Positions 45,777 through 49,117 of a stretch of 64,000 nucleotides of DNA are shown piece by piece (position 1 is the first letter of the stretch; each line of letters opens with the position of its first letter). Source of the DNA: Klebsormidium nitens (Eukaryota > Plantae > Klebsormidiophyceae). The notes beneath the pieces are model-generated. The model was not told the DNA's origin. It saw only the letters and a program-made list of their open reading frames with translations, and did no database searches. The stretch lies in the NCBI GenBank assembly GCA_000708835.1, contig DF237321.1, positions 26,334 through 90,333 on the forward strand. Direction: 5' to 3'. A program made the position numbers and the translations under genes.

Positions 45777-46434
45777 GGCTTCCAAACCCTAGAATGAACC
45801 TCTCCTGTCGCTCTCTATATGTTACGATGCAAAGTCACCAGTGATCTTTGATGCAGCTCTATCACATTACCTAACCGCAACCCGGAAAATCCACCCGTCA
45901 GAGTCGGCCACCAGAATGCCACCAGAAAGGGCAGCCGCAGAGCTTCTTCCCCTGCCTTCACCAACGCTCAAACATAGTGCTTTTCTCTCACGATGTCAAC
46001 AGCTCGTCGTTGCATTACTCCCTCCTTCCTGCTTTGTGTAACCGCGTGCTAACCTCGTTCTTGGATTGTCCGCGAAAGAAGCTGAAGTGTCAAAGCTCTG
46101 GTTTCGAAAACCGAATTCAGACTCCCTTCGACGACGTGTCGTGAGTTTTCGATCTAGAAGGCCCCAGAAGCATTGACACCATTCCGTGGGGTTTCGGACT
46201 GTTGACATAACCTTCAGTATAACCCTGGAGTTAGGTACCTAGTAGGTTTTGCTGAGGCACAAGGAAGCTCCCCCTTCCTGAGGCTGCAGATATCAGGGAC
46301 TGGATTTGAAGAGGAAAAGGGGCCAGGGAGGGCGCCAGCGTCAGCCGTCTGTTCAAACATATAAATCCAGGAGGTTGCTTCTTTCAAGGACAATTTTGAA
46401 AGGAGCAAGCGGGGTTGTCTGAAAGTTAGCAGCC

Positions 46435-49117
46435 ATGGCTGAGCATTTGGCTTCCATCTTCGGGACAGAGAAGGATCGCGTCAATTGCCCTTTCTACTTC
46501 AAGATCGGGGCGTGCCGGCATGGAGACCGGTGTTCAAGGCTGCATAACAAGCCCACAGCCAGTCAGACACTGCTTCTCTCCAACATGTATCAAAGTCCTG
46601 AAGCAGCTTACCAAGCGAACGGAGGAATCGGGCCTGACGGAAGGCCCCTACCACAGCTGGATCCAAGGAGGCTACAGGAGCATTACGAGGTACCTACTGG
46701 CTTGTCGCTCAATTTCTGTTGTTCAAGAATGTCTTTGTTGCAGGAAGGCAGTGGTCAAATCCAGCAGTTTTGATTGGGTAAGAATGCCTTTGTTGTAGAA
46801 ATGCAGTGGGTAAATCGTCTCGATTGCTGTACGAAGCAGCTTGAATCTGCACACTTTGGGTCTGATATATTGCCTGAGTCTTTGCCTGCTTTTGTGCTCA
46901 AGTTACGTATGTATCGTACGGAATGAAAAAGATGATAAAGATGCTTTTTGAATCTTGTCGCTGCCTGTGAGTGACTAGCTGGTAATGGTGCTCAGCATGT
47001 GCCTATGCTTCAGAGGAAGTACACCTAGTGTATGCTTGTGATGTACCCGCATGAAGATAGTTGTTCTACCTTGATTTTCTTGTGGTATTTGACATGTGCA
47101 TCTCATGCCTCTGTTGCTGATACTTGCGTGTTTGTATCAGGATTTCTATGAGGACATCTTCTACGAGCTGGGCAAATTTGGGGAGATAGACAATCTGGTT
47201 GTCTGTGCAAACATGGCAGATCATATGGTAAGTCTGGTGCGGTCACCCGGTGGCTTCACTGTGTGCAGGATTTCTATGAGGACATCTTCTACGAACTTAG
47301 CAAGTATGGAGAGATCGACAACCTCGTGGTGTGCGCTAACATGGCCGACCACATGGTACGTGAGGTAGCACTAAGAAGGATCGGTCACAGAGCAAACTCC
47401 ATCGCAATTGCTTCGAAGTTGATTTGACAATCTCGTATATTTGAATCGTTTTTCTTGTACCTTAATGCTTTGGCTTGCATTACGCAAATTCAAACTGCTT
47501 CGCTGTGGACGAAGTTGCCCGAGTTAATTTCCATAACTTATCGTGCCATCCTAGCAGTTGTCTCTTGCAGCCCTGGATGTTCTTGCTCCCCTGGTCCAGG
47601 CTCACTAACAGAGAGGTTTTCGCCAGGTTGGCAACGTGTATGTGAAGTTCAAGGAGGAGGAGCAGGCGGCTGCTGCTTTGGCTGCCCTTTCTGGCCGCTT
47701 CTATGGAGGTGAGGATTTAGAGTCCCTGTCATTGCCCCTGTAGTTTATTTTATTCAGTCCGCTGCATCCAAAACTTCGCTACCTCTTCTTATCAGAATCT
47801 TCGCTACCTCTTCTTACTCTGCTCTTCGGTATGTCAGCATAGTCAGGCGCGATTCTAGCTTCGTTCACGATCAAGTGTGCCTGGCTGGCTGTGTTGTCTA
47901 GCTTTTGATCATCTGAAGCTGCTTATGTCACAGGATTCCTTTAATGGTGAGCTCTTTTACTAATCGGCTCAATGCTGTCCCTTTGCAGGACGCCCTATCC
48001 TTGTCGACTTCTCCCCTGTCACAGACTTCCGTGAGGCCACCTGCCGGCAGCACGAGGAGACTGTGTGCAACCGCGGCACCTACTGCAACTTCATGCACGT
48101 CAGGAAGATCAGCAGGTCAGTGATTATGCTCTGCGAGAGCCCTTTTCTATTGTGCTTGAATGGTATACTGTTAAGACTTCATTGTGTTGCCACTTTGCTT
48201 CAATGCCTTGTGAAGAAGTCTAAGTACACTTGCCTGGGCTTTTTGACTTTTTGCTTTGTTCTTATTGTCTCGTCTGTACGTACTGGGAAGCTGACACTAG
48301 AATCTCTCGTGTGTGCAGAGAACTGAGGAAGAAGCTGTTTGGCAGCTATGAGAGGAGGCGCAGTCCAAGCCCTGTTGGACGGTAAGTCTTATTCACATCT
48401 GGTATCTGTACTTGTCATTACGATGTTCGTTGTTTAGTGTAGCGGTCTTCGAAACATGCCTGGCTTTCCGTTTATCCCATTTGTTACCTTAGATTAAGAT
48501 CCTGGAAAAAGAGACTCGAGTAAATCATCTGATTTTCTCGCAAGGTTTTGCGCTTACTCAGTCAGCAAGAATCCATCATCAGCGCTTTCGTTCTGAATGC
48601 TCAGGTATATCTCATGCCACTCGATTTGTTTCTTCGCAGAATCTCCTCAAACTGTTGGTCTAGGCCATTGCTACTGTCATCCTCGCCAGTCGTGTTCGTT
48701 GCCGCTTACTAATTGTTGATCATTTCTGTATGCAGGCGTGGCGGCTCTGACCGATACGACGATCGCCGAGGCCGCGGCGGGGGCGGCGGCGGCGGGGGCG
48801 GGGGTTACGACCGATACGACGATCGTCGAGGATACGGCGGTCGGGGGGGTGGCCGCGGGTATGACGACCGGCGGGGGGGTTACGATGACAGGCGTGGTGG
48901 CGGTGGGGGGTATGATCGCAGAGATGACAGGGGCCCCCCGCGAAGAGAGAGGGAGAGGAGCATTAGCCCGGTTCGGCGGAGATCACCCAGCCCTGTGCGT
49001 GAAGGAAGCGCGGAGCGTAGGGCCAAGATTGAGCAGTGGAATAGGGAGAGGGAGGAGAGGGATGCAGCGGCGGCGGGGGGTGCTCCGAAGACTGAGGGGG
49101 CGCCGGGGACGCAGTAG
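46435..49117 (+). CDS. U2AF35: Splicing factor U2AF small subunit (U2AF35)
   Basis: Exons 46435-46689, [47141-47227 or 47269-47355], 47627-47708, 47989-48115, 48319-48381, 48736-49117. Motifs: [40 protein letters not shown] (ZnF1), UHM with [28 protein letters not shown] (ZnF2), Arg/Gly/Asp-rich tail. Confidence 0.97.
47141..47355 (+). other. Tandem duplicated 87-nt coding exons, putative mutually exclusive pair
   Basis: [29 protein letters not shown] versus [29 protein letters not shown]. Both have CAG acceptors and GT donors and are separated by 41 nt. Confidence 0.88.

Follow-up and report, generated by a model that had tools for sequence, protein, structure and literature searches.

Twin copies of exon 2 in the U2AF35 gene of the alga Klebsormidium nitens are probably spliced one at a time

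Positions 46435-49117 on the + strand of the stretch analysed here (the window, 64,000 nucleotides (nt) of contig DF237321.1 from the streptophyte alga Klebsormidium nitens) hold a six-exon gene for the splicing factor U2AF35, in which exon 2 is present in two copies, A and B. The locus raises the question of whether these copies are used one at a time and, if they are, what keeps both from entering the same messenger RNA (mRNA). We consider it likely that the pair arose by tandem duplication within this lineage and that splicing takes only one copy at a time, with A as the default and the short spacer between the copies as a steric guard. The exon is duplicated, both copies are conserved and under selection, each is used separately, and the RNA contigs show no co-inclusion. 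The gene is laid out as follows (X1, X5, X7 and X13 are public sequencing runs, described below).

46435-46689, + strand: exon 1, constitutive, with the start codon, zinc finger 1 and the start of the UHM (from the translation and the spliced joints leaving 46689; equal to residues 1-85 of GAQ87722.1)
46690-47140, + strand: intron 1, 451 nt (GT..AG joint 46689 to 47141 in X1, X7 and X13)
47141-47227, + strand: exon 2a (A), 87 nt, phase 0, encoding ...ELGKFGE...; the default exon and the copy present in the public annotation
47228-47268, + strand: spacer, 41 nt, GT..AG, with the donor of A and the putative branch, pyrimidine and acceptor signals of B
47269-47355, + strand: exon 2b (B), 87 nt, phase 0, encoding ...ELSKYGE...; the alternative, unannotated exon
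47356-47626, + strand: intron following exon B, 271 nt (joint 47355 to 47627 in X5); retained with B in some RNA
47627-47708, + strand: exon 3, constitutive, encoding VGNVYVKF..., the RNP1 of the UHM (joints in all four runs; model check)
47989-48115, + strand: exon 4, with the end of the UHM and zinc finger 2 (joint 47708 to 47989 in all four runs; a loose end at 48115 leads into exon 5 sequence)
48319-48381, + strand: exon 5 (from the sequence; the loose-end letters from 48115 match, and the model equals GAQ87722.1)
48736-49117, + strand: exon 6, an RGG/RS-like tail with the stop at 49115-49117 (from the sequence; the model equals GAQ87722.1)

The identity of the gene is clear. The six-exon model with exon A encodes 331 amino acids and is identical to GAQ87722.1 ("splicing factor U2AF 35 kDa subunit [Klebsormidium nitens]"). 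The protein carries two Pfam zf-CCCH domains and one RRM_1, ends in an RGG/RS-like tail, as expected of a U2AF small subunit, and matches the solved structures of U2AF23 (PDB 4YH8 and 7C06) and human U2AF35 (1JMT). Apart from the spacer, its introns measure 451, 271, 280, 203 and 354 nt; the first three are confirmed by spliced RNA contigs and the donor of the fourth by the loose end. The earlier note on this DNA had remarked that the 41-nt spacer is far shorter than the other introns, and within this gene that holds. The isoform with exon B, which differs from the A isoform by G96S and F98Y, is without public annotation. The 90% protein cluster in which it would belong holds only GAQ87722.1 and the exon-1 open reading frames (ORFs) of two relatives, and a word-based search of proteins with the entire K. 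nitens sequence as query yielded neither isoform B nor another protein from the Klebsormidiophyceae.

A and B have the features of a tandem exon duplication, being adjacent, homologous, equal in length and phase, and intact at their splice sites. They differ at 16 nt (82% nucleotide and 93% amino acid identity). Fourteen of the differences are synonymous and fall at third codon positions, a share of 14/16 that is far from the one third expected by chance; the other two are the replacements G11S and F13Y of the exon, corresponding to G96S and F98Y of the protein. The opening 26 nt of the two copies are identical. The acceptor of A ends in TATCAG and that of B in GTGCAG, and the donors are GTAAGT and GTACGT, respectively. 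What the earlier note says of the sequence of the two exons is confirmed. The direct repeat has a unit of 128 nt and reaches beyond the exon by 3 nt on the upstream and 11 nt on the downstream side, and no third copy is found within the window.

We then turned to spliced RNA. The U2AF35 gene is present in 20 public runs, and the contigs of four of them, from four studies (X1, X5, X7 and X13), were placed on 46400-48150. A joint from exon A to exon 3 (47227 to 47627) occurs in all four runs, and the joint from exon 1 to exon A (46689 to 47141) is listed in X1, X7 and X13. Run X5 uses both copies. It contains a unitig specific for exon B (47267-47357, depth 441), which starts two unmatched letters ahead of the AG, as it would when preceded by the last letters of exon 1, and a joint from B to exon 3 (47355 to 47627) with a depth of 498. 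The unitig of exon A in the same run has a depth of 305, so that A and B sum to 746, compared with 888 for exon 1 and 744 for exon 3 to exon 4, which is the arithmetic expected if every transcript takes one exon or the other; the contig across the exon 1 junction is common to both exons (depth 726) and fits both places. No joint from A to B (47227 to 47269) and no skip from exon 1 to exon 3 (46689 to 47627) was found in the contigs of the four runs at a min_share of 1. The mutually exclusive splicing proposed in the earlier note is supported at contig level, the joint from exon 1 to B (46689 to 47269) being reached by graph logic. Exon A is the default, and B replaces it under certain conditions or in certain studies, in up to ~60% of transcripts.

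The two copies have also been kept for a long time. A search with the exon-1 ORF gave one close cluster with two contigs, L001 and L087, both from JGI sample 3300060285. Along 3.5 kb, with introns counted, the two share ~90% identity, and they could represent two related Klebsormidium-like strains or species, or diverged haplotypes or subgenomes. Both are syntenic orthologous loci, including the upstream gene for ribosomal L17, and their silent divergence (dS) from K. nitens in exon 1 is ~1. Both nevertheless keep A, B, all four splice sites and a spacer, here of 43 nt, which is ~80% identical to the 41-nt spacer of the window and is the sole alignable intron sequence: the block from A through the spacer to B aligns with the relatives as a single unit of 224 nt, whereas the ordinary introns do not align. 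In the comparison of orthologues, replacement differences (pN) are far rarer than silent ones (pS) in exon A (0.042 and 0.44) as well as in exon B (0.028 and 0.61), and both copies are under strong purifying selection. Between A and B, silent sites are saturated in the 3' 60 nt. Taken together with the conservation, this places the duplication well before the species split and indicates purifying selection on both copies since then. The difference at exon position 13, Phe in A and Tyr in B, is the only one that is constant in the three genomes.

The identical first 26 nt might be taken for a functional RNA element, a candidate that was set aside: the relatives show three and two differences within this region, and there are changes that both of their copies have in common. 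The four copies of the relatives all have a TAC codon, and the two of L001 also have ATT, where both copies in the window read ATC TTC. Gene conversion in the 5' part of the exon is the simpler reading and explains the identity in K. nitens.

Outside this small group the pair was not seen. The survey of other U2AF35 loci that the earlier note had called for was run over the green lineage, and among 84 loci the exon pair occurs only in K. nitens and its two Klebsormidium-like relatives; the other 81 have a single copy, many of them with the same exon borders. A query of 85 residues retrieved 80 loci, none closer than 76% identity, which served as the single-copy background and not as close relatives. 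Metagenome contigs gave no match to a degenerate DNA pattern for MADHM/GT...AG/DFYEDI with a spacer of 29-59 nt, a result of little weight since that collection lacks the known positive L001. An annotated U2AF35 of Quercus suber (P0123, 372 amino acids, from NCBI/UniRef) came out as top match because of a perfect internal tandem repeat of 54 residues (...RPDMITPG...CDNLADHM twice) in the same region; it was rejected as a parallel case, the repeat being probably an artefact of assembly or annotation.

What, then, keeps A and B apart? Co-inclusion would give a protein of 360 amino acids and double skipping one of 302, both in frame and without an internal stop. As both exons are multiples of three and the outcomes stay in frame, nonsense-mediated decay (NMD) cannot enforce the choice, and the pair does not fall into the NMD-policed class, in which double inclusion or skipping shifts the frame. 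Nor is an incompatibility of spliceosomes apparent: U12-type donors read (A/G)TATCC, and no U12-type signals are present at these exons, whose introns begin with GTACCT, GTAAGT or GTACGT and end in AG. RNA structure of the docking and selector kind is likewise not supported. From the end of A across the spacer into the first part of B, no stable or covarying fold was found (z +1.08, with 0 compensatory pairs). An inverted repeat of 19 nt (89% complementary) at 46832-46850 in intron 1 and 47484-47502 in the intron after B does bracket both exons and exceeds all 200 shuffles in the window; as L001 and L087 contain nothing comparable, it was dropped as a conserved mechanism.

With NMD, U12-type signals and RNA structure set aside, the spacer remains as the likely guard. 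At 41 nt (43 nt in the relatives) it places any branch A no more than 31 nt from the donor of exon A, well within the donor-to-branch criterion of <50 bp used in human surveys (PMC5740500). In a motif scan, the sole YTNAY motif of the spacer is TTCAC, with its A 31 nt from the donor, and this is the candidate branch site of B. The neighbouring introns carry branch-like motifs in ordinary positions, CTGAT 21 nt ahead of exon A in intron 1 and an ACTAAC-type motif 19 nt ahead of exon 3 in the 271-nt intron. The signals of exon B are weaker, with a GT-rich acceptor region, no conserved canonical branch motif and the donor GTACGT, and this fits B as a regulated or minor choice. The A/B pair goes back to an old tandem duplication of the 87-nt second exon, confined to this lineage and with a unit of 128 nt. 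A spacer of 41-43 nt would put the donor of A and the branch of B so close together that the spliceosome could not assemble across it, and a spacer too short to be removed would leave A and B without a way to be included together. Steric hindrance is thus the most likely cause of the exclusivity. That the spacer is still short and can be aligned, when the introns around it no longer can, agrees with selection on the arrangement.

Several points weigh against this reading. Productive B mRNA, with B joined to exon 3, is found in only one study out of four; the sole form of B in X1 and X7 is a 389-nt contig (47267-47655) that continues into the unspliced downstream intron. Since A and B start with the same 26 nt, the joint from exon 1 to B depends on graph logic. 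The RNA label of the runs is a guess, though the GT..AG joints show that they contain spliced RNA, and the evidence consists of assembled contigs, from which rare variants are dropped and in which depths are rough, so that co-inclusion or skipping at a low level would be compatible with it. The relatives do not conserve TTCAC, the one motif of the spacer that resembles a canonical branch site. On the minimum intron size of K. nitens, the main text of Hori et al. 2014 (PMC4052687) contains no intron statistics. At the protein level, exon positions 11 and 13 are the two most variable of the exon among 33 distinct green-lineage peptides, which makes a distinct protein function uncertain.

The B contigs of X1 and X7 bear on the rival that survives best, in which the choice of B would be mainly regulatory. 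Choice of B, whose acceptor region is weak and GT-rich and whose donor is GTACGT, would then mostly leave the downstream intron in the transcript, with a premature stop at codon 138, and so tune the output of U2AF35, with the B protein as a minor by-product; feedback is possibly involved, since acceptors with a weak tract depend most on U2AF35. In both runs B is contiguous only with the unspliced 271-nt intron, at a depth of 114 versus 1368 for A in X1 (8%) and 11.5 versus 94 in X7 (12%), while intron 1 stands at 0.8% and 5.7%, respectively. The spacer has no contig coverage in either run, its bin depth being fully explained by the contigs of A and B, so that the left side of B is not simply unspliced pre-mRNA; we read these contigs as transcripts in which exon 1 is joined to B and the intron is retained, with the stop at codon 138. 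The conservative nature of the residue differences between A and B also suits such a role. However, the amino acids of B are under purifying selection (pN 0.028 versus pS 0.61), which a purely unproductive exon would not need. In X5, splicing from B to exon 3 is efficient and A and B together reach the constitutive depth, and in X5 and X13 the downstream intron lies at the background level of intron 1. As the main account of B we regard regulation as unlikely, whereas a partly regulatory role of the choice, through intron retention, is a live rival.

Much less probable, to our mind, is that A and B are co-included through removal of the 41-nt spacer, or that the pair is a skippable cassette, and hence that the exons are not mutually exclusive. 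The GT..AG ends of the spacer, the preserved frame of both outcomes and the capacity of contigs to miss rare forms would allow it. Set against this are the absence of both diagnostic joints from the four runs (47227 to 47269 and 46689 to 47627, min_share 1) and the summed depths of A and B in X5; co-inclusion would moreover duplicate 29 residues inside the UHM fold, and the spacer has stayed at 41-43 nt where the other introns of the gene measure 203-451 nt. The idea that B (or A) is a by-product, a tandem copy of an exon edge decaying unused and without function in an intron, can claim the lack of productively spliced B mRNA in three of the four runs and perhaps the origin of the pair in an edge-copying process, yet it does not describe the present state and is scarcely credible: conservation and selection exclude a decaying copy, both exons being complete with intact splice sites in three genomes at a dS of ~1 and with pN 10-20 times below pS, B being joined to exon 3 at high depth in X5, and a neutral copy being expected to have lost frame and alignability as the surrounding introns did.

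The preferred reading, a tandem pair used one exon at a time, finds its closest parallel in the same gene family. Vertebrate U2AF1 has the exons 3 and Ab (isoforms U2AF35a and U2AF35b), which are 67 nt long, encode the segment between RNP2 and the beginning of helix A, and have NMD as their safeguard (PMC5224494). In both cases tandem homologous exons of the UHM are used singly and yield isoforms that differ by few residues in or around helix A. The algal exons, in contrast, are 87 nt long and encode the last part of helix A together with the strand after it; and whereas double inclusion or exclusion in vertebrates shifts the frame and leads to NMD, the algal outcomes stay in frame and the 41-nt spacer is the likely guard. 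The earlier note had held the algal pair to be independent of the vertebrate one and to affect a different UHM segment. This is supported by the exon lengths, the segment encoded, the preserved frame and the absence of the pair from the 81 other green-lineage loci. In its presumed mechanism the pair resembles instead the steric class, represented by exons 2 and 3 of alpha-tropomyosin and by the C. elegans genes egl-15, let-2, bet-2, gly-5 and gly-6, whose exon pairs are multiples of three with introns too short to excise (PMC4165533). Homologous exons that preserve the frame, with an intervening intron too short or a branch too near the donor, are common to all of them; those examples are from animals, whereas the algal pair is in a streptophyte and its donor-to-branch distance is predicted from the sequence. 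Among the papers searched, none describes mutually exclusive exons in Klebsormidium or a U2AF35 exon pair outside vertebrates.

With respect to the protein, the alignments to 4YH8, 7C06 and 1JMT place the twin exon at the end of UHM helix A and in the strand that comes after it. Residues 89-145 align to positions 13-69 of the Pfam RRM_1 profile, and residues 96-99, which include both replacements, fall on what we take to be the "s-k-f-G" end of RRM helix 1 in the Pfam consensus. Here the homologues of known structure have SKYGE or EKYGE, with KY in both Schizosaccharomyces pombe and human, and at exon position 13 F, Y and H all occur among the 33 green-lineage peptides. The A and B isoforms are predicted to have near-equivalent folds, and any functional difference between them is probably subtle; one might speculate that it concerns stability, or the two added hydroxyl groups of B as modification sites. 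Several residues are lineage-specific and common to A and B (Y8, D17, V20 and M25). At exon position 23 (47205-47210 and 47333-47338), both copies in the three Klebsormidium-type genomes read VCAN, at a place where Asp (VCDN) is invariant in all 33 other peptides of the green lineage.

To our knowledge, mutually exclusive exons, common in animals, have seldom been documented in the green lineage. Here a conserved and expressed pair lies in the very factor that reads the AG of the 3' splice site, and as the same gene evolved a pair independently in vertebrates, it offers a clean case of convergent evolution. The algal pair also provides a natural setting in which the "too-short intron" rule can be tested beyond animals, and the public K. 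nitens annotation has only one of the two U2AF35 proteins. One may go further and imagine that the A/B switch belongs to a wider one, in which Klebsormidium would change the isoforms of its splice-site recognition machinery in concert and according to conditions. This would re-tune the choice of 3' and 5' splice sites genome-wide, with the same duplication process behind decoy splice sites and switches; we hold this extension to be improbable.

A few minor observations concern the rest of the gene. At 46481-46510, 30 nt of the region of exon 1 that encodes the zinc finger recur in a 670-nt contig of run X13 (depth 59), which is unrelated beyond the loose end at 46510; this contig may stem from a paralogous CCCH gene transcript or be a chimera of the assembly. 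The RGG-rich tail in exon 6 contains a 60-nt direct repeat (48732-48851, 73% identity) that gives rise to repeated 'DRYDDRRG' units, and the intron between exons 3 and 4 has a 25-nt tandem repeat at 47766-47815 (88% identity). Intron 1 holds two tandem copies of 52-55 nt at 46710-46816 (75% identity), each ending in an acceptor-like TTGTTGCAG or TTGTTGTAG, which may be a small echo of decoy acceptors.

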